Translations under genes and position numbers: made by a program
Shown: positions 1,341 through 64,000 of the stretch, in pieces
How the letters are laid out: the number at the start of each line of letters is the position of its first letter
How positions within the stretch are numbered: position 1 is the stretch's first letter
Source: Octopus bimaculoides
Lineage: Eukaryota
NCBI RefSeq assembly: GCF_001194135.2
Contig: NC_068983.1
Location: forward strand, 15,394,452 to 15,458,451
Direction: 5' to 3'
DNA: 64,000 bases
Notes under the pieces: generated by a model
Database searches by the model: none
What the model saw: the letters and a program-made list of their open reading frames with translations, nothing else
What the model was told of the DNA's origin: nothing

Positions 1341-1459
1341 CTAAAAACCAACATCTTATCACTAACTTTCAAAGATTCTTCAATAAGGTTGAAGAGCAAT
1401 ACCATTTTACCACCATTTTCCAGTAATTCTGGTGTGTAGTCTTTCATTATTTCCGCTAC
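1341..1459 (-). CDS. RAD54L2: RAD54L2 exon ([40 protein letters not shown]), start of ATPase lobe 2
   Basis: aaaag acceptor and GTAAGT donor; 119 nt, phase 0 to 2; SNF2 'GKM..L' and motif IV 'LVFS'. Confidence 0.93.
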
Positions 1460-4264: not shown

Positions 4265-7200
4265 CAGTATATATAACATTTGTTGATAATCCTATTGAAA
4301 GCCCATTGCTGATGTCAACTCAATATGGCTGCTTTCACTAAAAGAGAAATGTAAATGTAAGTAACCCAAAAATGTACCAGCAATGGTGATCTAGAAGTTA
4401 AGAGCATTATCACTCTAACCATTTAGTATTCGGATTATTCTGTTAAATGTAATGTCTATTTATTCACACTGTTTTGAATTAATCATGTACTGCCTTGTAG
4501 CTTTGAGACTTTAATGTTGTGAATGTTTATTTTTAGAATGACATTGTAGAGTAGGTGTGAGAAGCTGGATCTGGCTGGTTTAAACACAAAAATAGAATAT
4601 TTGGACCAGATACAGCTGGTTTGAATACTAAAGTGTTGAGAAATAGACTCCTGGCTCAAATTAAATCTGAATTCGGTACCCATCTAATAACAAGACATTC
4701 GGTAAATATCAAAATCAATTTAAAACAATGTAAGTCAAAATATCAAAACATGCTGCATGAGGTTAATTCTTTTAGAAAACACATTAAGAAAAATGCCAAG
4801 TTAAATTTGGGGTTTAGCCGAAACAATATCTTACTCGAGTCACATTTTGTAATAGCGTTCTACTTTAAACACTGCTAATTTGGGTGTATTTGTGTCCTAA
4901 TGCTGTAAGAAAGGTGATTTATAGAGTTAAGAATTGCTCTAAGAATTGAATGGTTTACTGTGACTAGCTGTTTCGTCCAGGGTAAGAAACCAGAGACTCA
5001 TCTAGAGATTCCCAGTTCAGGAAAATATTTTCTTTTCAAGGTTTCAGTCATTGAACTGTAGTCATGGTTCCACACCACTTTTAGGGTATAGCTGATTACA
5101 TCAACCCCAGTACTTCATTTTTCAACACTGGAGCATGAAAGTCAAAGTGAATTGAGGTAGAATCTGAACTCAGAATATAAATGGACATAAACAAATAATA
5201 CCACAAGGTATTTTGTCAGATGCTCTACTGATTATATTAGTTATTTTGCTATTTGGTACACTGGAACTGAAAGAAGCCCATCGTATGTGTGTGTGTGTGT
5301 GTGTGTGTGTGTCCCAACATCGCTTGACAACCGATGCTGGTGTGTTTACGTCCCCGTAACTTAGCAATTTGGCAAAAGAGACCATTAAAATAAGTACTAG
5401 GCTTACAAAGAATAAGTCCTGGGGTCGATTTGCTCAACTAAAGGTGGTGCTCAAAATGACTGAAACAAGTAAAAGAGTAAAAAGTATATATTTAGCATCA
5501 ACCACATGTTAGTCAAAGACCATCCCAAGATCCAGGATTTCTTTTACTTTCCTTTCTCTCTGTCTTCCCCCCCTCCTCCCTTCCTTCCTCTTTTCTCCTC
5601 ATCTAAACAAAACGAAACGATATTCTCTTTTTGATTTGTATATAAGACTGAAGAAATTTTCTGTGCATCATATCTGAAGAGTTCCACTGAACAGATGAAA
5701 GCGCTAATAAAGAATTATCCAAAATTCTGACTGCCTCCTTCTTCTTAAAACACAATATCTGTACACCACTTCAAACACTCTATACATACATACATATATT
5801 TATATACTTACCCAGTCTAAAGAAAGGACATTGCTGTCTAACTTTTTCTCTGTTGTTGAAATTGTAGTAGGTACATTTCCTTGTGTTCCACTTTGGCTGC
5901 AGACATGAGCACCGGCAGTTGAGTTACTGCCACCATACATATTCGTGCTCTGCATATTCATGTTCTGGGAAACTTTGTTGCACATATTTACATTTTTACA
6001 ATCTTTAGCAGTTGTGTTTAACTGGGTGTTGTTACTACAACTATTCAAACCAGTATTGGGAGTGATGTGACCACTGATATCTCTGTTGTAGTCATCCTTT
6101 GATTCCTGATTGTTCTGATTTGTATTGCTCAGTAGCATGTTACCGATACCAAGAGAGTTGTTACTGTTCAAATGACTCTGCTTATCACTGTTCATTTGAC
6201 AAGGATTTATATTCATATTATTCATTTGGCAAGTAACATTACTTTTTATGTCTGTTATTTGTTCACAGCTATCGATATTTATATTTTTCATGGTATCATT
6301 TGTCAAGGAACAACTAGCATTGATATCAGGACCCAAATGGCTCATGTAGTTCATACTACTACCACCTAAGTGATTATTCGTATTTGCTGCACAAGACTTC
6401 AAGCTGGAAAGGCCCATGTTATGATTGCTATTTGTGGCATCATAGCAATGAGACTGATTGCCAAAATTCAAACCACTAGGAGGGCAAGAATTTAAATTGC
6501 TAGAGTCACCAATGGCACAATTGGAATTTATTACATCTCTACTAACCATGTTCATACTACTATTGCCACTCATATGGCTTCCAGAATTCAAACCATAGTT
6601 TAAATTCATTTGGTCATTAGCATTCATAACATTGCTAACATCATTATGTCTACTTGTATTCAAACAACCATGAGCATCACTATTTGAATGTGTATTCAAA
6701 TAACCTAAAGACCCAATATGATTTTCACTGTTCATACTTCCACTGTCCATTAGATGCCTTGTATTAGTTTGATCACAACTTGCATTCATACCAATATGAC
6801 TACCAGGAATCATATGGTCGTTATTAATGCAATTATTCTGACTGGACTCATTTCTAGTCATGCATTCTCCTGGCTCCAGGTTTCTTACCATATCTCCTCG
6901 AGGTTCATTATTCATATGACAACCTTGGTTAATGGTACTCATACCACTGTTAGAATCCTTATGGCAAGTTGAATTTAAGTAGGAAGCACTCAACTGGTTA
7001 TTATTGTCCTTCATATTGCTCATCTTCGAACTCATAAAACTCATGTTCTGTTCAAGGCTGTTATCATTACAAGTATTATTACCACTAGGTGTATTATTCA
7101 TTCCAGGACTGTTACATGATTGCATTCCAGAATTACAGCAAAGCCCTAGATCCTGGCCTAAACTGTAATTACAACAACTGTTGTCCCTTGATCCACTACA

Positions 7201-10200
7201 ACTATTCATTCCCATTCCTTTTGGTTGAAAACCAAGGTTCAAATTGTCACTTGTATTTGATCTATTGTTGCTGCAACATTTATGAGCATTATTTTTCATA
7301 TTAATAGGTTCAGGAAGTATTTTTTTCTTTGTATTTGCATTCATACGAGTAGAGTTGCCAATAGTTTTGTTTTTCTTTTTACCACCTGACTGAACACCAT
7401 TAACTTTTCCATCAGGTTCAAAATCCAAGTCATTGTCTTCAAGAAGAGTTTTCTGATGTTGTATAATTTTCCACATAACATCTGGATGGTTCCAAATCTG
7501 AATTTGACAATAGATATTAATACTTTTTTTGAAAGACTATATTGAAATCAGATTTTAAATATTCAATAATTAATTCAGATGCAATATTTTAAATTTAGCA
7601 AAAGAAAAAAATGAAAATTGTTTTTAAATGTACATATAATTCTGTAACAAATTAATGTAAGATATTTCAAGTTTTTTCATAATTTAGTAATGATAATCCA
7701 GGAGGAGTTTCTTGTAACTTATAAAATGCAAAAGCAAACATTTTTCACTTGCCAGACAAATGCAAGTCATAAAATAAATATTTTTTTACAGAAAATTAAT
7801 TACCTTACAACATGTAGAGAAAGCTTTCAAGGGATTGTAGCTTGCCCACATTCCCATTTCACAATCTGAAATGCAGTCCATAAATTTCTTGTAAAGTTGT
7901 CTTTGGATATTTGACATTCGGATAGTAAAGACATGTTCTTGTTTCGGGGGCAAACTAAACTGAAGGACTGAATGGCCTCTCCTGTTAGAATGAAAAGAAT
8001 GTGAAGTAAATTAATTTACAAAAACAAAATTTTTTTTTTCTATTAAGAAAGTAGATTTGATAATCATTTTTTAAAGATGCTTATCCATGTATTAAATATT
8101 TATGTTGCACATACAGCACTTAGATATGATGCTTCATATTTTGTCAATGACTCAATTTGGGTAATAGAATTAATCCTCTACACAGTTTAACCTCACATTA
8201 AAAAAAGTCCACTGCAATTACAATTTGGATCCAGTCTCTAGGTAGCTCAGATAACTCACTGTATCACATACACAAGACCCTACCATAGCTATAACATTCA
8301 CTTTTATTTACCAAGCAAGTAGCATGGAAACAAAACTCAAACAACTCAAGTGTCCTATTAAAATTATCCTAATCTCAGGCTTCCTCACCAAACATTAAAA
8401 AAATATGAACACAGAATATTTTATGGGTTCCTATCAAAGAGTTATGCTACTTTGAGATTTCATCATCATTTTGCACCTGTTTTCCATGCTGGCATTGGTT
8501 ACACAGTTTGACTGGAACTGGTCAGCCAGAGAGCTGTGCCAGGCTCAAGTCTAGTTTGGCGTGGTTTCTACAGTTGGAAGCCCTTCCTAATGTCAACCAC
8601 GCTACATGTCACCAGCACGGGTACCTTTTATGCGTCACCAACACTGACCACAACTACAATTTCACTTGGCTTGACGTGTCTTCTCAAGCACAACAAATTG
8701 CCAAAGGTTTCGATCACTTGTCATTGCCTCCCTCTTTTCCTTTTATTTTGGCTAATAAATTCTCCTAAATTCTTGTTTACTTTTATATTTTAAGAACATG
8801 TTAACAACTATTATGCTATAATAGTGTTAATGAAAAATATATCACTAACATTCTAATAGAAATGTTTAATTACTTAAGCAGAGCCTATTTGGCAGTTATA
8901 AAAAAATTATCAGCTAAGTAAAAATAGGAATTAAAAATAAAATGTGATATCTAAAAATAACAAAAAGAAAAAAGAAAATTAATTTAGAACTTGTAGTTTA
9001 GTAAAAGCATAGTCATATAGCTTAGGATACCAGTACTTGACTGGTAATTATTTTATTATTTCTGAGAGGACAGAAAGCCATTTAACAATTTAGAAATTTA
9101 AGATAAAATATAACAAAACTAAATCAGGAAGTAAAAATTACAAAATGAAATATTAACATTAAACAACATCTAAATCGTTTTGACATGTGCAGATAGAGAG
9201 ATAGAAGTGTGGTGGCGAGCATAAAGCACTCATATCTGCAATTATATATCTGTCAGTTTATTGTTTGATGTCAATGTCATAACTTGCCCATTTTGCTACA
9301 TTGCACATTTGTACATGTCATAACAGTTTTTAGTTCATCGTTTGGTTTGTTAAGAGCCAAAATACTGAATTTTTTTGTTTTTTCTATATTCAATACTATT
9401 AAGTGAAATTCATAACTTTGTGATAATCAAAAGTATTATTTGCAAAATTTCGTAATCATTTTTCCAGGTTAGTAAGAATATTACATAACAATAAAGCAAT
9501 ACTTTTTTACAGATGCATGTTCATTCTATTGCTAATTATTCATTTACAAAGTAGAACATAAATGAGACATGCTAACAGTTAAATCAAATAAGGCCAGAAA
9601 ATAATGTAATAATGTGCAATGCACAGACCATAATAAATTCACGAAAAAATTTTTTTTGAAAACTTTTCCCAAAAATATAGCCAATTTTTATAGGAGACTA
9701 GTATATGGGACAACTGAAGTGACCCCCAACAAAAACTACTAGACTTGTTTCATTAACCCTAAATGTTAAAAAGCAAAGGTGGAGCTTAGTAGTATTTAAA
9801 AGAGCAAAAGTAGGATGAAACTGTTAAGCATACTTCCATTTGTCTTATTTACTTTCCTTAAATATTATTTCTAACTTAGGCACAAGGTCACAAATTCAAG
9901 AGAGAAATGTAGTCTATTAAAACCAGTACTTGGCCAGTGCTTATCAACTTCAAAAGGATAAAAGACAAAGTCAAACCCAGTTGGATTTTAACCCATTTGA
10001 TTCCAACTTGTTATCAAAAGTTCTGAACCAAAATCTTCCACCAAACCTTAGTCACAATTTATGTTCCTAACACTAGCTTAATGATAACTAAGTTATTTTA
10101 CTAAATTCTTTGTTATATTTAAAATTAATTGAAAGAAACACAGAGTATCTCAACAGAAAGATGGTAAAAAAAGGGTTAATTCTAAACATTAAAAATGTTA

Positions 10201-13200
10201 TATTTGGTAATCTATCAACTCTGTCATCCACTTGGTTTATTAAAAAGAAAAAATTAAAAATATTTCTTACCTCTGAATAAATCCTTGCAACAAACTGTGA
10301 AGAACATGGGCTCTGTACCTCATTAAAGTGACATCCTCACGTGTACTGTCAACACATTGACCATTCATGATGGGTCGTTCAAACATGTTACAAAATTCTG
10401 CTTTTGTACCTAGATAGTTAGGTCTTACAAAGTCAACCATGCACCAATACTCCAATAAATTATTCTGCAGCGGGTAACCAGTTAGTACAATTCTTCTCCT
10501 TGAAAAAAAAAATTGTTTTAAAAATAAACATTAGTTAAAAGATCTAATTTTTAAGATTAAATTAACAAACACAAAAATGATTTTCCTTTACTGACAAAAC
10601 AATGTGGTTTTTCTCTCCAAAATAGTTTAGGCAGAAAGCCTTCTATAACTAGTAATAAAGCAGGGAATGTATACTGTGAATTCTACATTACAAAAGATTC
10701 TGTTAATAAAATGTACAGTGAGAATTTGAGAGAATTGAAATGCTTGAAGAAAATAATTAACTGTATATATGATGGGTGAAAACAGAATTCATGACATTTA
10801 ACGAATTGGAAAAGTAATAAACTGAAGACTTCATTTAATCATTGCTATATAATGCAGACCAATGCATCCCCACTAAAACCTTACTTAACTTGCTTAGGAA
10901 TAAAATGTGCCTGAGCAATTAATTGTATAAAGTTCAAGATAATTCAGATTAAGAAAACAGCCTTAATTGAGAGATTGGAGATGAGAGAGGAACTAGGTAG
11001 AAAAAAAAAAAATTTCTTTTTTTAATCAGGCAATATAAATGAAAAAGTTTCATAAGATAGGATTCAATGGTGCACAAAGTAAATGTAAGCTAAGGATGAC
11101 ATAAAGTAAGGCCAATACTAATTCTTATAAATTGGAGACAAGAGATACCAAATAAAACTAGCTCAACTCACGCTAACTTGAAAAAGAAATTGATACTATC
11201 AAAATAATAATGAGAAAAATATAACAAAATAACCCTTATCAGTTCCAATAATTGAACAGTTTTACCGACGACAATCATCAACATTGCACAATGTTAAATA
11301 TTTCATCAACAGAAATTAACAAAAAACTTATGGAAATGAAATTCATATTTGAAAAATTTTACATTAAATAAAACTCACTTTGTTTTAATGTTCTTCAATG
11401 ATTGAGCCACTCCAGACAAACTGTTCTTTATGCGATGGCCTTCATCACAAACAATCAAATCTGGTCCAGGATTCACAAGTGCTTTTTGAATGCCTAGAAC
11501 ATATAATTTAAAGTGTAAACCATTTAAATATCATTTTGTTATAATTACAAGAGAACTTCCAAAAAATAGCTTCATATCATATAGTGGCCTCTTAACACAA
11601 TTTCCTGAACACTTCACAAATTTTTTTGTTCTATTTAAATTCCTATTTAATTCTGTACTTTTGTCTCTTTGCAATTCATGTCTCAAAAATTTTTGTCCCT
11701 CTGCAACTTATGTCTCAAATCTTCATACTGACTAGAACGACCATATCAAATTAGTACTTTGCACTGAAAAATTTACCAAAATATGACTTCAAACAAAAAC
11801 CCAACAACATTCTTTAGATTGTACATTTCTCAAAATGCCATATATGGTTGTTTTTTATTATCTGCCTGATGAGACAACAAATAAATAAATTCATTTTTTT
11901 ATCTAAGAACTAAATTTATTTAAAATGCTTAGAAAGTTTACATTAGTAAAATAGCAAAAGAAAAAGGAATGAATTTCTGCCTTTTAATGTTTGAATAGCT
12001 ACTTAACAAAACTTAGTTATCGGCCAACTAAAAATTGTGCAGTACTGTCAGAAATATATACAAGAAGTAATTAAAATCCTTTGTTGTTGTCGAGTTGTTA
12101 GTAAGAGGAAAAGCACCTAACTTTAGAAACCATGCTAAAAAAGGAACACAATGGGAGCATGAACTCCATGTGTTATGTCACATGATATATCTAGGAAGGC
12201 TGATATTAGGTACAGAGTTGTCTGATTATCTTTGATGCTGTCGGTGCCAGATGATGAGGCCTACAATGAGTGAGATGCTATGAGATTATTCTGATCCATG
12301 TCAGAATGGAAAAATGGATGTAAAAATGGTGGTATATGTACAGTCACACTAATACTATCATATAAGTATTGTATTGCTAATTGATATTTATTAATTATTA
12401 TTACATCTTTTGACATTCCTGCTTTTCAGGATACAAAATAGTTTTCCATCTATTTAAATAAATGGCAAACAGAACTAAATTTATGTGCAAAATATCAAAT
12501 TTAAATCTTACCTAAATGTAATTTTTTATTCATATCTTCTTCCTCAATATCTATAACAATCGGTTCATTATTCTTCTTTTTCCTTCGAGAAGGGGGAGGA
12601 CCAAAAGTGCACTTTTTTGTTACCAACAATCTGTACATTTCATATCCCATCAAAAGTACTCCACCTACACGACTCCATTCATCTTGGAAAAAAAGAAGAT
12701 GAAATTAATGAAAATTTGCATTAAAATCATATAATATTCAAACATTATAAATGTAAAGTTGATCTGTAATTAACAAGAAAAATGTTTTTGATTTTTTAAA
12801 AAGTTTTTGAGACACCAGTAATTTCAACTGGATGTTAAACTTGATTAAATTCAATATATGTAAACTTCGCCTTACTGGCACTTGTGCCGGTGGCATGTGA
12901 ACAAAACATTGGACTGACTCCTGTGCAGGTAGCACGTAAAAAACACCATTTGAGCTTGGCCGTTGCCAGTACCGCCGAACTGGCCCTCGTGCCGGTGGCA
13001 CATAAAAAGCACTCACTACACTCTCCGAGTGGTTGGCGTTAGGAATGGGCATCCAGCTGTAGAAACTCTGCCAGATCAGATTGGAGTTTGGTTTAGCCAT
13101 CTGGTTCGCCAGTCCCCAGTCAAATCATCCAACCCATGCTAGCATGGAAAGCGGACGTTAAATGATGATGATGATGATAGGAATAATGAAGTGACTAAAC

Positions 13201-15596
13201 ATTTGCATATATTGTATTTATTCACATGTAAAATAGTCTATACACAGGGTGATTGTTCCTGAAATTTTCTTTAAAGTCTTTCAGATTATTTTTGTAATCA
13301 ACATATCTCAATCAAATTTCTAACTTTTTACATAGAGAGCCAACATGGAAGGCAGACAAACGATGATAATGATACAAAACCATTTTTTTTTTTATGGGAC
13401 AGATATAATCAATGAAATCAACAATTCCTAGAAATTGTTTTATTGATACTAGAGTGAAAGGCAAAGATTGAAGTGTAGAAATAAGCTTGATCTTGTTGAG
13501 GGATCAAACTTGCTTTTAATCTACATGATTGGTAAACCAAGTTGGAAAATACACTAATGGCCTTACTCCATCAACTTTTCTCATCTAGAAATATACTATA
13601 GATAGTGACAAAGAGATTTCCTACATAAATGAAATGTAAAGGAAAAGGTTATAGTTTAGCCACAAATTCTGAACCTGCAGGTTTAGGATCAAAGCCATTC
13701 CAGTTGAAACCTACATACACTTGGTGTATTGAGGTCAAGGTTAAATACATATGTATTTAGGTCTATATTATTCAATGTCTTTCTCTTTGATGGAAGAATG
13801 TGATTTGAAAGATATCTAGTTGAAACATTTAGCAGAACCATGTAGATGCTCCCTTATTGGCTTAAACATAACGAACAATTTATGTGGAAATCTGGACACA
13901 TCTGTAGGTATAGATGACCAAATAAGTAACTAGAATATTCAGTCATCCTAATTTGCAAACATACGAACTGGCTGCCTCAAGTCTTGGTAATTTTTCTCTC
14001 ACTCAACTAACCAAATTATATTATAAAAATAGAAGCAGAACTGATTCATTCTCCAGGACAGCTTTCAATTCCATTATAAAATATTTACATCAAGAATAAC
14101 CATAATTTATACGAGCACTTGATATTGTATGGTCATCAATAGGCTTCAACAAACAATGTGGTCTTCATGGAAGATGTGTAACATGAAGTAGCTAATTTAA
14201 TTGTGGATCTTGTACATTTCATCGTGTTTGTAAAAGACAGGAAAATAGGGCTCACCAAATCAACTAGCAGTAAACTAATTCTATCTAGAACTTTTTCAGA
14301 GAACTAAAACTTTCAACTTTACTGCAAACGAACCATGTCTGAAACTAAGAAATAAAAAGACACCCGATTTTATTTTTAAAATGATGGTCTAGATTCAACC
14401 AAAACCACAATTAAATTGATACTGTAGTTGACTGGTAATTATTTTATTATTTCTGAGAAGATGGAAAGCAAGCTGGGATTTGAACTTCAGCTAATATACA
14501 CCCTTACAGGACAAGTTTTAATGATAAAAGGATAATCATTAAAATTTAAAAATTTATTTTTCTTTAATAATAGGTAAAAAAGAAAACAGATTTTCCTGTA
14601 CACCAATAACCTCAAATTGGCTATGCTTCACTAAGAAAGTCTACCTTACTCCCAATATTTCTAGCATCATACATCATTGACATGGCATAACTAAAGATAT
14701 CAGTTGAACTTGCTTTGTATAACCTATGTTTGTTGTCATAAGCATGTCTTTATAAAAGTGTTGCTTCATTTGCTAAGTCTTCTGACAAGCCTTGGGAAAC
14801 TAAAATGCTAAGATGTTTACAAACTAGAAGCCCTCAAACAGATTTCCATACTCAATCAGACTGTTACTTAATGATAAAGATAATTCATTGCTCAGTTTAA
14901 CACCTGGCCCTCTGGGTGTCTTTAACAAATGCCATTCTGTTTCAAGCAGTTAGATCAGGGTCTTTATTCTGAAAATAAATTTCTTCCTTCCTCCCACTAA
15001 TCACAGAAGTCCGAAAAGGAGTCATGGATACTGTCCTTTCTCTTATGACTAAGTCTATTTAAAAAAAAAAAATTAAAAAAATAAAAGTATTACAAAAATC
15101 TTTTCCACTATAATTAGAAATTTATTTTTCAAACAGAAGACACGTTTACTTACCTAGTATTTTTGCTCTAGCTAAAGTTGTTTTATGATTATCATTGATA
15201 ACAAACAGCTTGAAGTTTCTTGTTGTGACATCAAGATTAGCTTTATCTTCAGAGTCCTCGGGTGATTTTTCAGGTAACCACATATTAAATTCAGCTAACC
15301 AATTCTGTATGGTGTTAATTGGAACAACGCAAAGCACAGATTGAGCCTCAGTGAAACGCAAAAATATATCAATAAAGCCAATGAGTTGAATGGTCTTTCC
15401 TAAGCCCATGCTATGAGCCAAGATACAGCCAAAGCCGCTGCTGGATTTAAATCGGCTTTGGGATTCTATCACATTATCATACAAAAATCTGATGCCACCA
15501 ATCTGAAATAAAATAAATATCAGAAAACTCAAATATACTTTTGATTTTATTTCCTTCCTGCTTTAAAAAATATTATACAAACATTATTATAGAAGC

Positions 15597-15627
<31 letters not shown>

Positions 15628-18600
15628 GGGAATGGAACAGAGACAAAAGAAAGTAATTCTTGAATGGTGAACCTAATCAACCAACCAGTTTAACTAGTTT
15701 GGTCCTTACCAGTTTTTAGCAGGGTTTATGCCATAAGCATTCAAACTTAGACATACAAACCCTTAACATAGTTCTCAGAGAGATTCAGCATGACAACTCA
15801 TTTTTGCCAGCTGAATGGACTAGAGCAATATGAAATAAAGTGTTTGGCTCAAGGACACATACTGCCAGGTGTTGAACTCACGGCCTTACAATCATGAGCT
15901 GAATACCTTAATCACATAATCACAGGCCTACACACACACCTATGTATAATAACTTGGACAAAGAGCCAGCTACTTTTAACATCTGCATTTCCATAACAAA
16001 ATAGGTTGGGAGTTTCTGCAGTAAAGCATTATCCATATATATAGACTTTATATCATATAAATGAATTAATATTCTAAGAACTGCCTACTACCTTAACAAT
16101 ATACATAAATTGAGTTCTACACTTAACTTTTACATTCAGCAAGAAGCATCTAGTTGCATTGTAAGTCCTTGCCAGGATAGTTACTGCTTAGACACATCAA
16201 GAAGATATTTTTGTTGACTAAATGTTTTCTAAGCATTTGCACTCAATTGTCCTAATATAAAACACTAATTCTCAACTCTTTTACCCACAATTAAAGAACT
16301 TCTTGATTGCCTATCAGTCAAAGATTTCATTTCATCATTGACTATATGATAAAGAATTACTACTTATTTTCTTCCTATATACTCAACATAGCTATTCCCC
16401 TAAATAATAAGTTTCTATTGGTCTCTTACTACCAATTAGTATCTTTAATGTTTACTTTCAGAACTATTAATCGAGCCTTATCATTGTAATCATATTACAA
16501 AGATTATGACTGCAATGAAAACTAAGTCATTTACAAACTGAAGCTTTTATAAGAATTTGGTTTTTACTATTTTACTACTAATATTAAGAGAAGGAGGGCC
16601 TAGCACAAAACCTTACTGAATTTATATATATATATATATATATATCATCATCATCGTTTAACGTCCGCTTTCCATGCTAGCATGGGTTGGACGAATTTGA
16701 CTGAGGACTGGTGAAACCGGATGGCAACACCAGGCTCCAATCTAATTTGGCAGAGTTTCTACAGCTGGATGCCCTTCCTAACGCCAACCACTCAGAGAGT
16801 GTAGTGGGTGCTTTTACGTGTCACCCGCACGAAAACGGCCACGCTCGAAATGGTGTCTNNNNNNNNNNNNNNNNNNNNNNNNNNNNNNNNNNNNNNNNNN
16901 NNNNNNNNNNNNNNNNNNNNNNNNNNNNNNNNNNNNNNNNNNNNNNNNNNNNNNNNNNNNNNNNNNNNNNNNNNNNNNNNNNNNNNNNNNNNNNNNNNNN
17001 NNNNNNNNNNNNNNNNNNNNNNNNNNNNNNNNNNNNNNNNNNNNNNNNNNNNNNNNNNNNNNNNNNNNNNNNNNNNNNNNNNNNNNNNNNNNNNNNNNNN
17101 NNNNNNNNNNNNNNNNNNNNNNNNNNNNNNNNNNNNNNNNNNNNNNNNNNNNNNNNNNNNCTACCTCTTCCACGGGTTCCCTCAACTGTTAGGGTGTGGC
17201 ACTTTTTCACGCAGCTATCCTCATCCATTCTCACCACATGTCCATACCAGCGCAATCGTCTCTCTTGCACGCCACAACTGATGCTTCTAATGTTCAGCTT
17301 TTCTCTCAAGATACTTACACTCTGACGGGTATTCACATTGACATTACACATCCAACGGAGCATACTGGCTTCATTCCTTGCGAGCTTACGTATGTCCTCA
17401 GCAGTTATATATATATATTTTCAATTTTTTTAGGTTATCTCTTAATGGCATTCACAACACTCGTAAGTCAGTCTTTCACACCTAACCTTTTCAATGCCTA
17501 TCAGGATGTTGAATGAAGACTCAGAACACAGTCAAAAAACCTTCTCTTAATAAATAAATGCAAACTAGAATTCTTTGATATTTCTAAAGAACTTTCTTTC
17601 AGCTACCTCAACAGAAAAATATGATCCACATACCAAAACAAACACAAACAGTATGAAAAGAAAAGTTAATTCCAGTCTAGCACACTAATCAAAATGTGAC
17701 TTCATCAAGACAAATTAATCAGTTTCAATTCTATTAAAAAAATATATTTAGCAAATCATTACTTTCAAATATCTGTTTGAGAATTCTCCCAAAAATAAAA
17801 TAAAATATCCATGTAAAGAATTGAAAATTAATTTTCACCTGATGTGGTTTAATAACACTTGCAATGTGTGGAGGGAGGAAAACATCAGGGTCACCTTCAG
17901 GATGACCAATATTAATTAAAACATTGCCGGTTTCGTCTGGTTGATTCAACTCATCGTTAATATGTGTACCAACATTATCCATATCTTCTTCCTCTTCTTC
18001 TTCCTCTGCCTCCTCAGGCTCTTCATCACTTTTTATCATGACAACATCATCATCATCACTAAGTTCAATGATGTCAGTCAACACTAAAAGTAATAATATA
18101 ATAAAATATTAATACTCATAAGTACAATGTTGCTATTTAAAATATTTTGAAGCTTTTTTTTTTATTATTCAATTCAAGTTAATTATTCAGTAATTGTATA
18201 CAAACAACAATTATCATCATCATCATTTAACATCCGCCTTCCATGCTAGCATGGGTTGGACGATTTGACTGAGGACTGGTGAAACCAGATGGCTACACCA
18301 GGCTCCAATCTGATTTGGCAGAGTTTCTACCGCTGGATACTCTTCCTAACGCCAACCACTCCGAGAGTGTAGTGGGTGCTTTTACGTGCCACCGGCATGA
18401 AGGCCAGTCAGAAGGTACTGGCAACAGCCACGCTCAAAATGGTGTATTTTACGTGCCGCCTGCACAGGAGCCAGTCCAGTGGCACTGGNNNNNNNNNNNN
18501 NNNNNNNNNNNNNNNNNNNNNNNNNNNNNNNNNNNNNNNNNNNNNNNNNNNNNNNNNNNNNNNNNNNNNNNNNNNNNNNNNNNNNNNNNNNNNNNNNNNN

Positions 18601-21600
18601 NNNNNNNNNNNNNNNNNNNNNNNNNNNNNNNNNNNNNNNNNNNNNNNNNNNNNNNNNNNNNNNNNNNNNNNNNNNNNNNNNNNNNNNNNNNNNNNNNNNN
18701 NNNNNNNNNNNNNNNNNNNNNNNNNNNNNNNNNNNNNNNNNNNNNNNNNNNNNNNNNNNNNNNNNNNNNNNNNNNNNNNNNNNNNNNNNNNNNNNNNNNN
18801 NNNNNNNNNNNNNNNNNNNNNNNNNNNNNNNNNNNNNNNNNNNNNNNNNNNNNNTCAGTGACAATGTTGTTGTTGTTGTTGTTGGCACTCCATCGCTTAC
18901 GACGTCAAGGGTTCCAGTTGATCCGATCAACGGAACAGCCTGCTTGTGAAATTAACATGCAAGTGGCTGAACACTCCACAGACACGTGTACCCTTAACGT
19001 AGTTCTCAGGGATATTCAGTGTGACACAGAAACAGGAAGTAAGAGAAAGTTGTGGTGAAAGAGTATAGCAGGGTTCGCCACCATCCCCTGCTGGAGCCTC
19101 ATGGAGCTTTAGATGTTTTCGCTCAATAAACACTCACAACGCCCGGTCTGGGAATCGAAACCGCGATCCTATGACTGCGAGTCCGCTGCCCTAACCACTG
19201 GGCCATTGTGCCTCCACTCAGTGACAGTATAATTTTATAAACAATATGTCATTTTCTCAAATTACTAATATTAATAAACATACCTCCAAAAAAAATCAAA
19301 ATTATGATTATACAGTATAAAAAAAAAAAAAAGCAAATTTCACTTCCATACTATGTGAATCATTGTAAATTTAATAACTCCATTACCTTTCTTCTTGTTC
19401 TCATCTCCACTGTCAAGAAGGATAACATCATCTTTGCTAAATTGTTTGTTAGTTTCTTCAGTACCTATAAATAGAATAAGTAGACAGATTTTAAAATTTG
19501 AATACTAAAACAAGGACTCCTATTAAGGTTTTACAATTGTAAACGGGCAAAATCCAAAATCCAGTGTGACAGGTAGAAAGCAAATGCACTAACTCATTTA
19601 ACAATCAGCGTTTGCTGGCAGAATTTGAATTAACAATCTGAATAGCATCATCATCATCTACCACTTTTCCATGCTTGCAGGAGTTGGAAAGAATTTGTCA
19701 AGACAGATTTTCTGTAACTGGACGCCCTTCCTGTTGCCAACCCTCACCCGTTTCCAAGCAGGGTAATACTTCCCATGGCCAGACATGTTTTTCCATGGAA
19801 AACTGGAAACAACATTGATTGTATGATGGTGATGCATGTTTATAACTATCATGTGATGTCTAGACAAGAGTACACACACACACACATACATAAACTACAG
19901 GTTTCTTTCAGTTTCCATTCACCAAATCTACTCCATGCAGTGGGATTGAACCCAAGTCCCACTGTATGGCACCTTGAGCAATAGACTAATATAGATTCTC
20001 CATTGCATGATAAAGCTTATATTTTAGTGAACGTTTTTTTTTATTTAAATATTATCAATTAATCAACAAAGGACAAATGATAAAAAAAAAGTGATAAAAA
20101 AAGTGATGACAAATTTAACTGAAAATTACAACAATTCAACTTGACCATGAAAGAGATAGAGAAACCACAATAAATAGATTTATCGGTTTTATTTCATAAT
20201 CAAGCTGAAGTGATATTAAATTTCATAGAAATTTGATTTTTTTTTTACCATTTTTATTATTAACCCTTCATCAATTAACCCTTTACAATTCAGATTACTC
20301 TGCCAATTTTTATGCTTATTAATTCACACAGTTTTGAATTAATCATGCATTATCATGTAGCTTTGAGATTTTGATGATGTAATTGTCTATGTTTAGAATG
20401 ATAGTATAGGGTTGGATTTGGCCACTTTGAACATAAAATAAGTTGAATATTTGGGCTAGATATGGCTAGTTAAGTGATAATTTTTTTAAATAACATTCAC
20501 TAAAATATGGTGGTTTTTATTGGGTTGTCCGGAAAGTTCGTGCCGATTTTTAAAGGAAAGAAAAAGGTCGACAAATACTTGCCATTACATTTTTAATCAA
20601 TCAAATATGAACCATTTTGTTGCACAATTCGTCTCCATCTTTCCTTTAACTTGAAAATACCCTCTTCCCAGAATTGAGGTGGTTTCATGGCAAATAAGTC
20701 AAAAGGTAAACTACTATAAATCAAGACGAACTTTCCGGACAACCCAATATATATATATATTAAAAAAAGAAAGAAAATTTACCAANNNNNNNNNNNNNNN
20801 NNNNNNNNNNNNNNNNNNNNNNNNNNNNNNNNNNNNNNNNNNNNNNNNNNNNNNCTAATAAATAAGATGGCACATAAATAGACACACACAAGAATGATTT
20901 TATCACAACATCCAATTATTCCTTGCTACCTACTATTAAACACAACATCATTACCATCATTCAAATTAAACATAAAAGACTAACAAGGAACTATATGAAA
21001 AAAAACTAATTTTAATATGCTTGTACCTTCAATACAATAGTTTTATACATGTATGTGAACAAATACAAACACATACACTGGCCAAAATAAATTTAAGACC
21101 GATAAGAACAGTTCTATCCCTTCATTAATTTATTTTTAACAAAACTGTATAAAATTAGTTTACTTTTTACAGTTTATGTAGAATCTTTTCTCTTTCGAAT
21201 GATACAGGCATTATATATCTTTCTACAATTTGAATAGTTTTAATGCACAATTAATTCAAATGATTGAAATTTGTCAGCAAAATAAGTAAGTTTAAGATTG
21301 TACCAACATTATTTTGTTTAAATTGAAAATTTACATCACAAATGATCAACAAACAAAAATTTATTATTAGTATCCTAGTTCCATAACCATTATTTTCAAT
21401 TATGGCCTTACGACGGCATGATATGGAGTTCGACAAATGAGCACAAAAATCACCTGCCATATTTCTTCAATAAAAGTATATAATTTGGAAAATTATATAT
21501 AACATGAACTCTTTTAGGAACATAATTCCATAAATTTTCTATCAGATTCAAATCCGGGCTCTGCAGAGGCCACTCAATAACCACCACATTATTGCGCTCA

Positions 21601-24600
21601 AAATATTGCAAAACTTTCCTAGCCTTATGAACGGAGCAATTGTCCTGCTGGAAAATAGATCCCAGTGGCATCTGATTATTTAAATATGGCAGCACATTTT
21701 TATTTACTAATTGCAGATAGCCTACACTGCTCAATCTGCCATCAACTTTAACAATTGGACCAACACCTAAGCTGCTGAACACTGCCCACACCATTACCCA
21801 CCACCTCCCATTTGCACCGTTTTCTTGACACACTTAGGATGGAAATTTTCAGTTGGACAGCAGCTAACATAAGTTTTTCTGTCTGATGCAGAAGTGGGAT
21901 TTGTCTCTCCAAAGAACTTTTGAGCAGTCTTTGGCCATCCATTCAATATGGCTTTTAATAAATTCGATCCACTTCCACCAGTTCATCTCAGAAATTATCG
22001 GCTTCTTTAGAGCAATCCAGCCAAACAGTTCAAATTTTTTTAGGCAGTTTCTTATTTCTTTATTGCCCACAAGGGGCTACACACAGAGGGGACAAACAAG
22101 GACAGACAAACGGATTAAGTCGATTATATCGACCCCAGTGCGTAACTGGTACTTATTTAATCGACCCCGAAAGGATGAAAGGCAAAGTCGACCTCGGCGG
22201 AATTTGAACTCAGAACGTAGCGGCAGACGAAATACCGCTAAACATTTCACCCGGCATGCTAACGTTTCTGCCAGCTCGCCTTAAACTGCTCTTTTAGGCA
22301 GTTTCTGACAGTTTGTTGTGTAAAGCTGATGTCCGTTTAATCAGATAATTGCTTGCAAATGTCCACTGCTGCTAGCATTTGGTTACCTTCAGAGAGCCTA
22401 TGAATTCACCGATCCATTTGTATTGTTGTTTTTCTTGGAGTGCTCATTCTTTGCTGATCTTTGTATTGGCCAGTGGCTTGATAAAGTTTCCATGCTTGAA
22501 CACAAGCCGTATTACTGCATCCTAATTGCTTGCTATGTTCATGGAGGACACATTTTGCTGATGAAGCAACACAATCTTTGATCTAGTAACTTGGCTGATA
22601 CCACGACGCTTTCCCATAGTGAATTAATGTGTGACAATGCTCGATTACTAAACAAAACAGTGTAGTTTGACCAGCCATATGACCACCCATTTGGTTTATC
22701 AATGTGTATAATCTTGGTACGGTCTAAACTTATTTTCCCGACAATTTCTAATCATTTGAATTAATTGCAGATTAAAATTATTTGAATTGTAGAAAGATAT
22801 ATAACTCCTATATCTTTTGAAAGAGAAAAAATTCTACACACACTGTAAAAAGTAAAATAATTTTATACAGTTTTGTTAAAAATATATTAATGAAGGAATA
22901 CAACTGTCAATACCGGTCTTAAACTTATTTTGGCCAGTGTATATGTTAGTGTAAGGTGCCACCTTACATGACAGTAAGATGGCACCTTACTGTCATAGCA
23001 GTAAGATGGCAAGCTGGTAGAATCATTAGCACACCTGGCAAAATGCTTACCAGCATTTCATCCATCTTTGCATTCTAAGTTTAAATCCTGCCAAGATTGA
23101 CTTCACCTTTCATCCTTTCGGGGTCGATAAAATAAGTACTGGAGTCAAAGTAATTGACTTACCCCTAATATTGCTGGCCTTGTGCCAAAATTTGAAACAA
23201 ACATATCACAGCAGTAGGCTACAAGTTTTAGTTATGGTTCAACACATGACAGGCACATGTGTTTCTTAGCATGTTTTAACATATGATGAACTAAAACCAA
23301 CAGCTAAATACAAGTTAATCAAAGTTATAAAGTTTTCTAGTCAGTGATAAGGACAGCATTCCAACAGCCACAGGGACATTTACTGCTGAGAGTTTGAGCC
23401 CAGAACCATGTGGTTGGGAAGCAAGCTTCTAGCTTCTTACCACACAGCCAGTATGTATATTATTATATTGCAATATATTAAGAAAAGGTTGCTCCATAGA
23501 ATCACAGGTTAAAATTCAGATTTTATACTTGGTATAGTAAGGATGGATGTTGGTTTTGAGAAATTCTTTTTTTTAAGTCCATATCCCTACACACACACAT
23601 ATATATATGGTAATTGATACAGAAGAATGTGAGAAAACTAGTGTTGGATTTCACTGACAATTAGTATGTCCAATGAAGTATTCTGTTGGAAAAGCTAGAC
23701 TTCACTTCTTCCTCAAGGCAAAACAATTTCATTTTGTGAACTTTAATAAACAAACACACACACATATAAAACTCATAAAATTTTTGAACAAAATAATGCT
23801 TACCTAATATTTCTTCTTTTGGTTTTTTCTTTCTCTTTCTTCCGTTGACGTTTGAGTGTTAGTTTTCGTTTTCGAGATGAAATTTTTGGTTTCTCTTCAT
23901 CATTGCTGTCACTTTTCTTCTTCTTGCGTCCTTTACGAGAGCTCTTCTCTTTGCTTTTTACCTTTTCTGTATCTTTTTGCGTTTCCTCTTCCTCATTATC
24001 TTTCCCACCATCATCATCATCATCATCATCCTCATCATCGTCAGCGTCATCGTCATCATTGTCTCCATCCTCATCTTCATCATCTCCAGAAGACGATGAG
24101 GAGTCACCATCTTCATTTGAAGATGAATTTGAACTAGTGCTATCAGAATCCGAAGAATTTGAGCTTTCGCTATCAGCATTATCTTCACTTGAAGATGGAG
24201 ATTCGTTTTTGATTTCATTTTCATCTTTTGGAGTAAAGGACACATCTGATTCTTCCTTTATGTCTTTAATATCTTCCATTTCAATTTTTGATTGTTTCGA
24301 TTCCACTATATCACTGTCAGATTCATCGTCATCATTTTCAACTTTCTTCACTCTTTTTCTTTTATGTTTCTTTTTCTTTTTATTGCTGTCAGTACTAGGT
24401 TCTTCTTTCTTTACTTCCTCCTCTTCGTCGTCATCATTTCTTTCTTCAGACTGTTCTGAATGAGCTTGGGGTGAAGATGGATCCATCTTATCGTTACCAA
24501 TCAGATTTTCTTCAATATTTTTATCTTCAGGTTTTTCACTATCAGAATTTACTTCATTCTGAATGTCAGTTAAATTATCATTTTCTTGAGTATCTTCTTT

Positions 24601-24750
24601 GTGGCTGGTAACAGCTGCAATTAAAGTATCTAAATAATCAACCTCTGCCATTTGATCATTTAATTGGTTTATTGAAGCATTGCAACTGGATATATTATCA
24701 ACACTAGTTTCCATATTGGCCGATATTTTATTTAGACTGGTATTTGATAA
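1341..24750 (-). CDS. RAD54L2: RAD54L2/ARIP4 SNF2-family chromatin-remodelling ATPase, multi-exon, 3'-incomplete in this window
   Basis: Spliced translation gives an acidic N-terminus, then ...[15 protein letters not shown]|[10 protein letters not shown]...[15 protein letters not shown] (Walker A/motif I), [10 protein letters not shown] (motif II), [22 protein letters not shown] (motif III), LKAFSTCCK|IWNHPD and [16 protein letters not shown]...KMLVFS. These match the RAD54L2 subfamily as I recall it. All junctions are GT-AG and phase-consistent except across the 20.8 kb gap. Confidence 0.95.
2573..3540 (+). mobile_element. pogo/Tigger-like DNA transposon relic (5' end with Brinker-type DBD remnant)
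   Basis: TA followed by a degenerate CCGTA-type TIR. 3235-3350 translates to ...[31 protein letters not shown], a pogo N-terminal HTH. Homologous to 34361-35663. Confidence 0.75.
3670..4263 (+). mobile_element. Old RTE-related retroelement 3' end with (GAT)n tail; similar copy at ~45910-46510
   Basis: Pyrimidine-rich body, 'ggtgttgggaagagcatccag...atgctagcatgg' 3' motif, (GAT)n tail. Confidence 0.6.
5812..7497 (-). CDS. RAD54L2: RAD54L2 giant exon: IWNHPD, then a ~500-aa Asn/Ser/Met/Cys-rich insert, ending ...VLSLDW
   Basis: aattcag acceptor and GTAAGT donor; 1686 nt = 562 stop-free codons, phase 0 to 0. Conserved residues at both ends join in frame to the flanking exons. Confidence 0.9.
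7804..7981 (-). CDS. RAD54L2: RAD54L2 exon ([16 protein letters not shown]...[11 protein letters not shown])
   Basis: ctaacag acceptor and GTAATT donor; 178 nt, phase 2 to 0. Confidence 0.94.
8460..8660 (-). mobile_element. RTE-type 3' end fragment
   Basis: (ATC)n followed by 'ttttccatgctggcattggtt...cccttcctaatgtcaacc', homologous to the other copies. Confidence 0.7.
9992..10175. mobile_element. TTAA-flanked MITE; relatives at ~25110-25270 and ~48150-48360
   Basis: ttaa|ccc...ggg|ttaa ends; internal sequence shared with the other copies. Confidence 0.55.
10271..10498 (-). CDS. RAD54L2: RAD54L2 exon containing motif III ([13 protein letters not shown]...GFIQR)
   Basis: tttcaag acceptor and GTAAGA donor; 228 nt, phase 2 to 2. 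Confidence 0.96.
11379..11493 (-). CDS. RAD54L2: RAD54L2 exon containing Walker B ([16 protein letters not shown])
   Basis: ttctag acceptor and GTGAGT donor; 115 nt, phase 1 to 2. Confidence 0.95.
12512..12682 (-). CDS. RAD54L2: RAD54L2 exon ([19 protein letters not shown]...[10 protein letters not shown])
   Basis: ttccaag acceptor and GTAAGA donor; 171 nt, phase 1 to 1; absent from the ORF track. Confidence 0.92.
12871..13177 (+). mobile_element. Young RTE LINE 3' UTR fragment with (GAT)n tail
   Basis: Near-identical to the 3' UTR attached to RTE ORF2 at 40043-40712. Confidence 0.85.
15154..15502 (-). CDS. RAD54L2: RAD54L2 exon containing Walker A (AHSMGLGKT) and motif Ia
   Basis: tttcag acceptor and GTAAGT donor; 349 nt, phase 0 to 1. 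Confidence 0.96.
16644..17405 (-). mobile_element. 5'-truncated RTE LINE (ORF2 C-terminus + 3' UTR) spanning an N gap
   Basis: Translates to [20 protein letters not shown]...[20 protein letters not shown]...GTRGRG, an RTE-clade C-terminus; (ATC)n tail at 16644. Confidence 0.88.
17839..18083 (-). CDS. RAD54L2: RAD54L2 exon ([10 protein letters not shown]...[10 protein letters not shown]...VIKPHQ)
   Basis: cttttag acceptor and GTGAAA donor; 245 nt, phase 1 to 0; conserved pre-ATPase segment. Confidence 0.93.
18213..18488 (-). mobile_element. Young RTE 3' UTR fragment
   Basis: Same family; runs into the N gap at 18489-18854. Confidence 0.85.
18864..19217 (-). mobile_element. Full-length tRNA-Arg-derived SINE (octopus OR-type) with (CAA)n tail; second copy at 32621-32918 (+)
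   Basis: Head has an A box (TGGCCCAGTGGTT), a TCG anticodon-like loop and a B box (GGTTTCGATTCC). 9-bp TSD tcagtgaca at 18855-18863 and 19218-19226. Confidence 0.85.
19387..19464 (-). CDS. RAD54L2: RAD54L2 78-nt exon ([25 protein letters not shown]), absent from the ORF track
   Basis: ttatag acceptor and GTAATG donor, phase 1 to phase 1. Joins in frame to the next exon (G+TG = Val). Confidence 0.8.
20520..20747. mobile_element. mariner-type MITE
   Basis: Perfect 22-bp TIRs ttgggttgtccggaaagttcgt / acgaactttccggacaacccaa, flanked by TA. Confidence 0.9.
21076..22939 (-). mobile_element. Full-length but disrupted Tc1 transposon
   Basis: 26-bp TIRs with one mismatch (cactggccaaaataa(a/g)tttaagaccg), TA on both sides. 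Frameshifted transposase remnants: [24 protein letters not shown]. Confidence 0.92.
22053..22291 (-). mobile_element. Young tRNA-derived SINE with a Meta-like central domain, nested in the Tc1; relatives at ~5060-5235, 23003-23205, 39300-39520
   Basis: 15-bp TSD ttttaggcagtttct on both sides; B box gagttcaaattcc; central 'gcctttcatcctttcggggtcgat..taagtaccag' resembles the MetaSINE domain as I recall it. Confidence 0.8.
23804..24750 (-). CDS. RAD54L2: RAD54L2 acidic/Ser-rich N-terminal exon; likely start ATG at 24714-24712
   Basis: Acceptor ttccag ends at 24751 and the donor GTAAGC starts at 24750-947=23803. The ORF encodes poly-D/E, Ser runs and basic clusters and ends RRNI-AG (phase 2), matching the conserved RRNIR motif. 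Confidence 0.88.
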
Positions 24751-25803
24751 CTGGAAATAAAAGACAGAAAAACAGAAAAATAAAATTACTTTATTGTTAA
24801 CAAATTCCAAATACATAATAAATTTATGGAAAGTAAGTGGATTAATTTTAATCAACAACTCTCTATATTGGTAGTATACTATAACATATAAATGACATGA
24901 AGAAATACATATTCTCTTGTAAATAGTTAATAAAAACATAATATTAACACTTTGGAATAATTATCATCATTAATTTTTTATGCTTTTTTAGTCAGGAAAA
25001 TCTATTTGAGGATCTAAAGGTTTGCAATTCAATAAACAATGCTAACTACTTGATTTGATATGTTAAGCTTTTAGCAACGAGTGAAACTCAAATATAACAC
25101 CTTCACTGCTTTAATCCTTTTGATACTATCAAAACTGCAACTGCTTTTAGTTCTATGATACAAACTCCCTACTTTAAAGTAATGTAAATGGAAACCTCCC
25201 AGCAAAACTTCATGTTAATTTATATTCCAAGCACTAATTTAATGACAGTTATTTTACTAAATTCATTATTTTCAAAATGCACACACACATATACAATGGG
25301 TTTCTTTCAGTTTCTATCAGTCAAATCCACTCAGAAGGATTTGGTCAGCCCTGGGTTGACACTTACCCAGGGTTCCATGTAGTGGGACTAATGCTGAAAC
25401 AAGATTTGAAAGCAAGGTCCTTAATCACACAGCTAGAATACATTAGTATATTTTTAATTAAAAACAAAACAAAAGAATGAAGCAAAATAAATTAAAACAG
25501 ACATTTAGGAACAAAGTATATCAATGTGTTAACTGATGTGGTTATCTGACCTGCTAAAATTAGCAACCAAATCATCTTTAAATCAAACCTATCTTGAAAA
25601 AATAATTTTAAAAAAAAGGATACAGTGGATGGTGGGCTTTTGGATACACTATGAAAAATAGACAGAATGATTGTGATTAGAACAGCGTTGATCAAATGAT
25701 CTGTTCAATCAGGGTTGATAAGACTACTGTCTTTATATGTTTTAATGATAACCTACTGCAAGATCTTTTGCTTTACAACCCTTTGCCTTGTTTACATTTT
25801 TAA

Positions 25804-26960
25804 CACTAGAAGGACCGGACTTTTCACCTACCATTAAGGACCAGAATGTGTCATTTGAGGCAATGAGGTTTCTCAGTTTGAAAGGGAAAAAAAAAAAGAA
25901 AAGGATAAGTAGAAAACCTTTATTAAATGTATGAATCTACTGGATTTTATGATTTCATGATATTAGTCACAATAGTTTGATATTTTGATAGAAATTTATC
26001 CTTACAAATTAGAAAGAAATTTATTGAAATTCTAAACATTTATCACAATATTTCAGCACACATTTGCCACACAGAGGTTTTTTACAGACTCCATACATTT
26101 CTGTGGTTCTGTTTCAGCATTTTGTTTCCACATATATACATCTGACTTAATTTTTAGAGGAAGAAGTTTCCTCAGTAGGTGTTTGATAGTACATGAACAA
26201 CCATGAGGTGAATCACCACAAATATCTTCAGCAACTTTTTGAATATATTCCTGTTCACTAATGACTGAGTTACAAACACTTGTGTATAAGCTGTTTACAA
26301 GAGCAACATCCAAAATATTAAAAAAACATGCATTGGCCATCATCTACTGATTGCTTTGACTGAATAATGCCTTGCCATTTGGTCAAGCATGTCTACGCCT
26401 ATTTTATTTTTGTTATAAAAAAAAAGTATGGTGTCAGGGTTAGGGTTAGGCTTCTTGGGTTTATTTTCAGAAAGAATTTCTACATGTTGATGTAAGGTAC
26501 CAACAACAGACTTTGATTTTTTGCACTGGTATGATGTGTGACAGTAGGCTTCTCTGTGGATTTCAAAACTACTGTTTCATAGACTGGTTTCACCTGTTTT
26601 ACTGCTTCTGCTAATTCCCTTCTGTTGTGACGAATTGTTCTGACTAAACTGCAGTTTTGTTTTGTGAGCTGCAAAGGCTAAGCAATTACTGAATATCTAA
26701 AACAGTGTCACATGTATTAATAAACAAAAGCAAGTGCAAGTTTCAAAAGTTGCAAGTGCATCAATTGACGCATGGTCCTTATAGGTAGTATGTGTTTTTT
26801 GTTTTTTTTTACAGTTGGTACAAACAACCTATAATTTATAGTGTATATAGATATCATAAAACTATGAAAAGTCAAGCACCATGATGCCAAAATCAGTTTT
26901 TGAATTGTGTGCAATTAAGACTTCAAAATGCATCAGTTGACACACTCGGTCCTTCTAGTA
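25804..26960 (-). mobile_element. Internally deleted piggyBac transposon
   Basis: TTAA|CACTAGAAGGACC left end and GGTCCTTCTAGTA|TTGA right end. The minus strand reads FYNKNKIGVDMLDQMARHYSVKAISR*WPMHVFFNILDVALVNS, the piggyBac DDD C-terminal block. Confidence 0.88.
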
Positions 26961-40792: not shown

Positions 40793-40873
40793 TTGAGGAA
40801 TAAATATTCAAATGAATATTTATATAGATATTTTAATTGTTGATCNNNNNNNNNNNNNNNNNNNNNNNNNNNN

Positions 40874-52579: not shown

Positions 52580-52631
<52 letters not shown>

Positions 52632-58280: not shown

Positions 58281-58289
58281 TTGGTTTTC

Positions 58290-63707: not shown

Positions 63708-63771
<64 letters not shown>

Positions 63772-64000
63772 CTATTGAGTTAGACATGGTCTGGGCCTAT
63801 ACTGGCCGAAACCTATCAAAGTTATATATATCTATATATGTATTGTTTAAAACAGTTTGATTTGGTTCTGTGCAACATCCAGTTTCACAGGCCCCTAGTA
63901 GGAGCCTGACTCCTCCAAGCTTCTGGAATGCTGAATGAAGAAGTCCAAGATGGTTACTGGAAGACAGGCTGCTATAGGTCAAGGTGGGTCACTTGATATT

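Follow-up and report, generated by a model that had tools for sequence, protein, structure and literature searches.

The major insertion region of an ARIP4/RAD54L2-type SNF2 ATPase from Octopus bimaculoides was found to be encoded by a single exon of unusual length, which would place a polar loop with approximately 490 additional residues between the two ATPase lobes. The exon (5812–7497, minus strand) lies in a stretch of 64,000 nucleotides (nt) on contig NC_068983.1 (NCBI RefSeq assembly GCF_001194135.2, positions 15,394,452 to 15,458,451 of the forward strand), which was analysed as a whole and is called the window. The octopus loop adds a further case to a known kind of event, the growth of low-complexity sequence at the Snf2 major insertion site; such expansion recurs within RAD54L2, as long loops at the same site were also found in bees and a midge. 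We consider it fairly probable that this is a translated constitutive exon, whose hinge loop has grown by in-frame gain of low-complexity sequence and has remained flexible and weakly constrained. All feature coordinates are collected in Table 1.

The exon comprises 1686 nt or 562 codons without a single stop. Its phase is 0/0, as the junctions of the neighbouring exons can be read directly, the upstream exon ending in ...TGT TGT AAG/GT and the downstream exon starting at AG/GTA GCG. A pyrimidine-rich flank (...tcaaattcAG) precedes the exon and GTAAGT follows it, while the ATG-to-stop open reading frame (ORF) over the exon encodes 558 amino acids (aa) at 5800–7476. The original prediction of a stop-free, symmetric exon with canonical splice sites, which begins with IWNHPD, ends with LDW and is joined through the junctions 7804 to 7497 and 5812 to 1459, is borne out by these readings. 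At the local base composition, the chance of 562 consecutive open codons ranges from 5e-19 to 2e-20 (about 1e-19), and the remaining five frames contain 21–80 stops each. AAY codons occur 104 times in frame versus 11 and 23 times in the other two sense frames, 72 of them being AAT and 32 AAC. Codon periodicity is strong along the entire exon, with A making up 50 % of first and T 47 % of third positions. Asn accounts for 18.5 % of the residues, while base composition alone would give 6.3 %. No runs of N, i.e. assembly gaps, were found in or beside the exon, and its folding z-scores of +0.34, −0.66 and −0.43 are ordinary, giving no sign of a structured RNA or an editing-type duplex.

The gene is assigned by homology to the ARIP4/RAD54L2-type SNF2 ATPases. 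The spliced lobe-1 exons match Pfam SNF2-rel_dom with E = 1.5e-47, and motif I (MGLGKT) as well as motif II (CDEGHRIKN) can be read directly in them. Named homologues are annotated as "RAD54-like protein 2" or "Helicase ARIP4" (Magallana gigas, Alca torda, Eumeta), with top identities of 60–88 %; among named proteins aligned over most of the query, the oyster ARIP4 K1QUU1 of M. gigas has the highest identity with 71 %. The best match in the PDB is ATRX (9l06 chain K) with 1.6e-79, compared to 1e-36 for RAD54. The identification as RAD54L2 made earlier is supported by all three lines of evidence. Lobe 2 is covered by the window only with its first 40 residues (block K to motif IV, ...KMLVFS), the rest lying beyond coordinate 1.

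With block C and block K as the limits of the Snf2 major insertion region, a definition taken from the literature, the extra sequence can be placed within this region, between the xWNHP motif of block C and block K. The exon starts with IWNHPD, and its terminal Trp stands 38 residues ahead of ...VFS(Q). The alignment of block C and lobe 2 together with the ATRX match likewise supports the earlier assignment to the variable insertion between RecA lobes 1 and 2. That the site between blocks C and K is variable across Snf2 proteins is known.

Aligning both exon ends with nine orthologues showed that the ends have counterparts, whereas the approximately 490 residues in the middle have none. The N-terminal anchor reads IWNHPDV(L/M)... 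in the orthologue alignment and is followed by an acidic patch, which by analogy with DDM1 may be an H4-tail-binding loop. Lys-rich patches follow at a place where orthologues also carry basic residues, and they could act as a nuclear localisation signal. A short C-terminal anchor ending in LDW closes the exon. The phase-0 introns directly before IWNHPD and directly after the conserved Trp are in identical positions in octopus, bird and an animal locus (L002); the former, following CCK, is also shared with L003 and insects, and the latter is present in bees too. Judged by this distribution, the two introns bracketing the variable region are ancient in position. Between the same two introns, the homologous exon of the bird Alca torda comprises 84 codons and that of L002 comprises 96, so the exon itself is ancient and internally enlarged about six-fold in octopus. 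The 84 codons of Alca torda also confirm the vertebrate length of about 90 aa given earlier. It had further been remarked that skipping the exon would keep the frame at the cost of IWNHPD; this is correct, yet moot, since the orthologous exon, which carries block C, is constitutive.

Linker length, counted from IWNHP to the conserved Trp, was measured in fragments and full-length proteins found via their conserved flanks. It amounts to 49–115 aa in 21 sequences and to 52–111 aa in 14 more, with Megaselia scalaris T1GC81 reaching 147 aa, and the octopus exon is 5–10 times longer than most orthologues (49–147 aa). Nearly all proteins from the two homology searches are shorter than about 370 aa, so that long linkers are under-sampled where both ends have to lie in one fragment; longer full-length models were reached only through cluster look-ups. 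The lobe-2 start nearest to that of octopus (30 of 40 residues identical, with LENGGKM shared) was found in L007 (Logan SRR27666084, nt 1–200), an intron-less, cDNA-like contig. The 25 residues ahead of its ...SLEW are rich in N, T, C and S (KTNANTCTQNTSTVSIGTNSCTQG); beyond them the contig stops, its nt 1–3 being an in-frame TGA. L007 may represent the nearest available relative and may come from a related mollusc whose linker is similar. Literature searches for RAD54L2 together with octopus, or for Asn-rich regions in cephalopods, returned nothing, and an expansion of the linker is not described in the results found for ARIP4. The binding site of a known ARIP4 partner was considered as possible linker content and discarded, as the p62-binding SID covers residues 1044–1135 of mammalian ARIP4, outside the linker.

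Composition sets the insert apart from the rest of the protein. Counted over the 562 exon residues, N occurs 104 times (18.5 %), in line with the roughly 103 (about 18 %) counted by hand before, followed by S (13.9 %), G (7.7 %), M (6.4 %), C (4.8 %) and H (3.6 %). The core of the insert contains 19.8 % N, 14.9 % S, 7.9 % G, 7.1 % M, 5.6 % T and 5.4 % C, with N, S, G, M and T adding up to 55 %, a charged fraction of 0.12 and 2.2 % aromatics. As Asn makes up only 7.9 % of the N-terminal disordered exon of the same gene and 6.1 % of lobe 1, the Asn bias is confined to the insert and does not simply reflect the AT richness of the genome. The longest Asn run in the exon is NNN, and its Shannon entropy is 3.89 bits. 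The abundance of Asn, Ser, Met, Gly and His had been noted before, the high Cys content had not. The 27 Cys are accompanied by 36 Met in a Cys/Met-rich portion covering exon residues 74–533, with CC pairs at residues 74–75, 108–109 and 120–121; neither zinc-finger-like Cys spacing nor a Pfam match was found in it.

The insert could not be linked to any other sequence. It contains no Pfam domain, and a phmmer search with the exon against 1.84e9 representative proteins returned 0 hits, not even the octopus protein itself; the collection seems to be without the species and its relatives. An exact look-up of the 558-aa ORF found no record of it, and a homology search with a 139-aa query joining the C-terminal end of the insert to the next exon gave no match either. 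Tandem repeats of note are absent from the exon DNA, where direct matches are short and only roughly 70 % identical, and self-similarity of the insert protein does not exceed that of shuffled sequences. The dipeptides NT, MN, LG and SC are enriched about 2-fold, which is lost after correction for multiple testing, and no similarity was found between the insert and the rest of the window. AlphaFold2, run on the exon as a single sequence and therefore weak evidence, gave a mean predicted local distance difference test (pLDDT) score of 30.9, with 541 of the 562 residues below 50 and just one helix, at residues 5–20 in block C, with a pLDDT of about 60. In a FoldIndex-type analysis, 71 % of the windows were negative. 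The models agree with the intrinsic disorder proposed in the original prediction, and the extra sequence is probably disordered and of low complexity.

The description as prion-like fared less well. The Michelitsch–Weissman criterion asks for at least 30 Gln plus Asn residues (Q+N) in a window of 80, and the octopus insert reaches a maximum of 26 at residues 440–519. A PAPA-type score, re-implemented with approximate propensities, peaks at 0.084 near residues 275–355, and 7 % of the windows exceed the threshold of 0.05. With its few aromatics and 27 Cys, the insert departs from what is typical of prion-like or FUS-type domains. The Q+N maximum, the aromatic and Cys contents and Asn runs of three at most weaken the description as prion-like; the insert is better described as a polar low-complexity disordered tract, for which the term prion-like is borderline at best.

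Longer loops at the same site were found in insects. A bee-like metagenome contig (L001, the P0096 contig) encodes a linker of approximately 905 aa with 21 % Q and 12 % N, read across one intron and with one frame correction of 1 nt. The frame shift lies at about 8724 within a run of CAG/CAC (Q/H) codons, where the open frames overlap on both sides, and probably reflects a mistake in assembly rather than a pseudogene. Two closely related loci, L008 and L009, carry linkers of 617 aa and 820 aa, each in a single uninterrupted ORF. Cluster look-up placed this clade among the bees, and the RefSeq model XP_076230756.1 of Calliopsis andreniformis (3104 aa) has a linker of 827 aa composed of 13.5 % N, 13.3 % Q, 15.6 % S and 6.5 % Y. 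The maximum of Q+N per 80 aa is 32 in Calliopsis and 51 in L001. Linkers of the bee group (617–905 aa) are 42–79 % identical and differ by 17–334 gapped columns (283–334 except for the closest pair), while the adjoining lobe-1 segment is 98–100 % identical. According to these alignments the bee loop is retained, yet fast-evolving in length and sequence. The linker of ARIP4 from the midge Polypedilum vanderplanki (KAG5670343.1) measures 273 aa and contains 16.5 % N, 15 % S and 7.3 % Y.

The bee genes (Calliopsis, L001, L008, L009) resemble the octopus gene in family, in the site (IWNHPD...YDW), in the phase-0 intron after the Trp and in having an open, polar, N/S-rich tract of low charge. Their anchors are also alike, with an acidic DLDLEE patch, a basic patch and a K/E/D-rich stretch before YDW. 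They differ in that the linkers are longer and rich in Q, N, S, Y and P (Q 13 %, Y 6.5 %, C 0.5 %), contain poly-Q runs in L001 and reach the 30 Q+N per 80 residues that the octopus insert does not. Polypedilum shares with octopus the site, a similar content of N and S and the same Q+N maximum of 26 per 80 aa, but its linker has half the length, has no Cys and hardly any Met, and with its Tyr content resembles a classical N/Y/S prion-like tract. Because the insect linkers are unlike the octopus insert in sequence, the expansions in octopus, bees and midge are independent. The insert had originally been presented as a lineage-specific novelty. This holds insofar as it is without a homologue among the 1.84e9 proteins and 5–10 times longer than most orthologues; it does not hold with regard to the bees, whose Q/N-rich loops are equally long or longer, or to the 273 aa of Polypedilum, so that these insects go some way towards the finding named at the time as speaking against novelty, equally long N-rich linkers in most invertebrate orthologues.

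Some features of the bee genes touch on how such loops are annotated and where they occur. An older UniParc bee model (UPI0000513B32, P0262) has most of the linker spliced out and 87 aa left, whereas the current RefSeq model of Calliopsis (P0304) and the uninterrupted ORF of L009 keep 820–827 aa. The bee orthologues furthermore have a second low-complexity insertion of roughly 250–300 aa inside lobe 1 before LNDSHKT (L001 6774–7958; in Calliopsis between NMWLPYED and FRLHILNDSHK), at a site where the octopus gene has about 20 residues.

To explain the octopus exon, we propose that an ancestral loop of 50–150 residues, as found in the subfamily, would have grown to the present 562 residues through in-frame gain of about 490 polar residues. 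The codons gained are mainly of the A/G-A/G-T type (AAT, AGT, GGT, GAT) together with ATG and TGT, in a genome of 33 % GC. As block C and the Trp anchor both lie in this exon, it could not be skipped and its reading frame would stay open. Since the block C helix, the acidic DLDxD patch, the basic patch and the EKK...LDW end are retained as anchors, the two ATPase lobes would still dock normally, with the extra chain looping out as a flexible disordered tract. This tract would probably be a tolerated spacer of weakly constrained sequence, offering at most a weak multivalent interaction surface, and it would be neither a folded module nor a true prion domain. We infer translation in vivo, neutral or weak selection and the mode of origin. 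Several observations weigh against this account. A neutral disordered tract would not usually be enriched to 5 % Cys and 7 % Met, the support for disorder comes from an AlphaFold run on a single sequence and is weak, and independent long polar loops at one site in bees, midge and octopus could point to selection.

Selection for a functional module, i.e. a prion-like or condensate-forming tract or a gate on lobe coupling, appears unlikely, though it is the competing explanation that fares best. It would account for the independent appearance of long polar loops at one site, with Q+N reaching 32–51 per 80 aa in the bees and Polypedilum coming close to a classical composition, for the persistence of the loop across bee species, for the low charge of the octopus core, for the PAPA-type peak above threshold (approximate parameters) and for a frame kept open over 1.7 kb. 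Against it stand the Q+N content below 30 per 80 aa, the short Asn runs, the few aromatic stickers beside 5.4 % Cys, the absence of repeated motifs, the dipeptide enrichment that fails correction, and the fast evolution of the bee loops with hundreds of indel positions. The main support for a selected condensate or gating function comes from the insect convergence and not from the octopus sequence itself. That the insert drives condensates or tunes how the lobes couple, as put forward in the original prediction, is purely conjectural. A more specific version, in which the site confers a selectable property and the independent loops of mollusc, bees and chironomid midge would promote concentration-dependent self-association that brings the remodeller to nuclear bodies or act as an entropic gate on lobe closure, we regard as improbable; the octopus Asn/Ser/Met/Cys version would then be chemically distinct and possibly redox- or metal-sensitive via its 27 Cys.

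The long frame could also be an exitron, with in-frame splice sites inside the exon removing most of its centre from the usual mature messenger RNA, so that the full frame would represent a minor isoform. With 1686 nt the exon is far longer than the other exons of the gene within the window (115–349 nt), and the UniParc bee model with its linker cut to 87 aa illustrates that predictors disagree on such regions. A region that is mostly removed would, however, not stay open over 562 codons or keep its codon periodicity. The exon moreover contains no GTRAGT donor, its sole pyrimidine-tract acceptor match is located at the extreme 3′ end, and the RefSeq bee model and the ORFs of L008 and L009 retain the whole linker, which makes an exitron very doubtful. 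Capture of sequence from elsewhere, foreign or mobile (a transposon turned into exon, a coding fragment inserted by retroposition, or DNA derived from an intron), or an assembly artefact is extremely improbable, for despite the Tc1/mariner remnants and seven assembly gaps in the window, no N run lies in or near the exon, the insert resembles nothing else in the window, no Pfam domain and none of the 1.84e9 proteins searched, conserved motifs continue in frame at both exon ends, and exonising 1.4 kb of non-coding DNA at about 7 % stop codons is implausible.

Growth of a tolerated hinge loop, the account we favour, can be set beside other Snf2 proteins. The Snf2 family has in common an insertion-tolerant site between block C and block K at the same topological position, and in most other remodellers the major-insertion loop has been described as short and acidic and as touching the H4 tail. 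ATRX (9l06 chain K), which belongs to a sister subfamily, has IWTHP and DW...SGKMVLLF aligning to the exon ends and an insertion of approximately 112 aa; its loop is five times shorter and not Asn-rich. The variability of this site in Snf2 proteins was reportedly treated by Flaus et al. 2006. INO80 and SWR1 have long insertions at the major insertion region, conserved modules onto which Rvb1/2 and other subunits dock. The octopus insert differs from them in being unconserved low-complexity sequence with no known partner.

A likeness of another kind is offered by Plasmodium falciparum and Dictyostelium, organisms with AT-rich genomes in which Asn-rich low-complexity insertions occur within conserved domains. 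The octopus insert would have in common with these an AT-rich genome, Asn dominated by AAT and a surface-loop insertion sparing the flanking motifs. Insertions in Plasmodium and Dictyostelium are typically homopolymeric or nearly so in Asn, in contrast to the octopus insert with no run beyond NNN and an entropy of 3.89 bits.

If translated, the exon would yield an ARIP4/RAD54L2 with about 490 disordered polar residues at the ATPase hinge, and nature would thereby have tested the amount of unstructured chain that a Snf2 motor can bear. Octopus, bee and midge together mark the RAD54L2 site as a recurrent hotspot for low-complexity growth, which is usable as a comparative system for neutral versus adaptive growth while revealing no new mechanism by itself. 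For annotation, the exon is a reminder that internal exons of low complexity can genuinely be very long and that gene predictors should leave them whole; the old bee model broke up the equivalent region.

Table 1. Features of the 64,000-nt window from O. bimaculoides; positions count from the first letter of the window.
Feature	Position	Strand	Basis or remark
Exon under study	5812..7497	minus	spans the entire Snf2 major insertion region: block C (IWNHPD) up to the conserved Trp that precedes lobe 2
N-terminal anchor, block C helix	7438..7497	minus	aligned in all orthologues; aligns to ATRX IWTHP (9l06)
Acidic patch DNDLDFEPD (orthologues DLDLDxEE)	7408..7437	minus	alignment and orthologue fragments
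Basic patches KKKNK...KKK	7321..7380	minus	K/R-rich patches at matching place in orthologues
Expansion, ~490 aa, polar, low charge	5854..7314	minus	composition; no domain, repeat or homologue; pLDDT <50
C-terminal anchor, ends LDW (orthologues EKKEExxS/Y-L/Y-D/E-W)	5812..5853	minus	alignment
Upstream exon, end of lobe 1, (R)RGHSVLQF...AFSTCCK	7804..7981	minus	splice and phase reading
Downstream exon (ENGGKM exon), block K and start of lobe 2	1341..1459	minus	alignment, ATRX match
Lobe-1 exon, motif I MGLGKT	15154-15502	minus	open stretches
Lobe-1 exon	12512-12682	minus	open stretches
Lobe-1 exon, motif II DEGH (CDEGHRIKN)	11379-11493	minus	open stretches
Lobe-1 exon	10271-10498	minus	open stretches
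Open stretch with probable first coding exon, METSVDN...	23803..24960	minus	open stretch; composition
Tc1/mariner-type transposase remnants, degenerate, intronic/intergenic	21453-21833, 57497-58296	minus	Pfam DDE_3 3e-10 and 1.5e-10; HTH_Tnp_Tc3_2 7e-14
Transposase-like open stretches	26056-26576, 60808-61255	minus	no Pfam match
Seven N runs	16859-17160, 18489-18854, 20786-20854, 32435-32620, 39829-40003, 40846-40873, 45408-45598		

The stretch with the probable first coding exon contains, besides its 7.9 % N, 17.4 % D, 14.5 % E and 13.8 % K. It encodes an extremely acidic Ser/Asp/Glu tract followed by Lys/Arg-rich patches, a low complexity that differs in flavour from the Asn-rich insert of the same protein. 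The window has a GC content of 33 % and long introns, and no Rfam families were detected in its 64 kb. Two of the seven N runs interrupt introns of the RAD54L2-like gene close to its exon at 17.8 kb, and none of them touches the long exon. Microsatellites of the (TG)n/(CA)n and (TA)n type are plentiful (5200–5300, 52500–52800, 62400–62800 and 63500–63800) and give rise to open stretches reading CVCVCV or YIYIYI.

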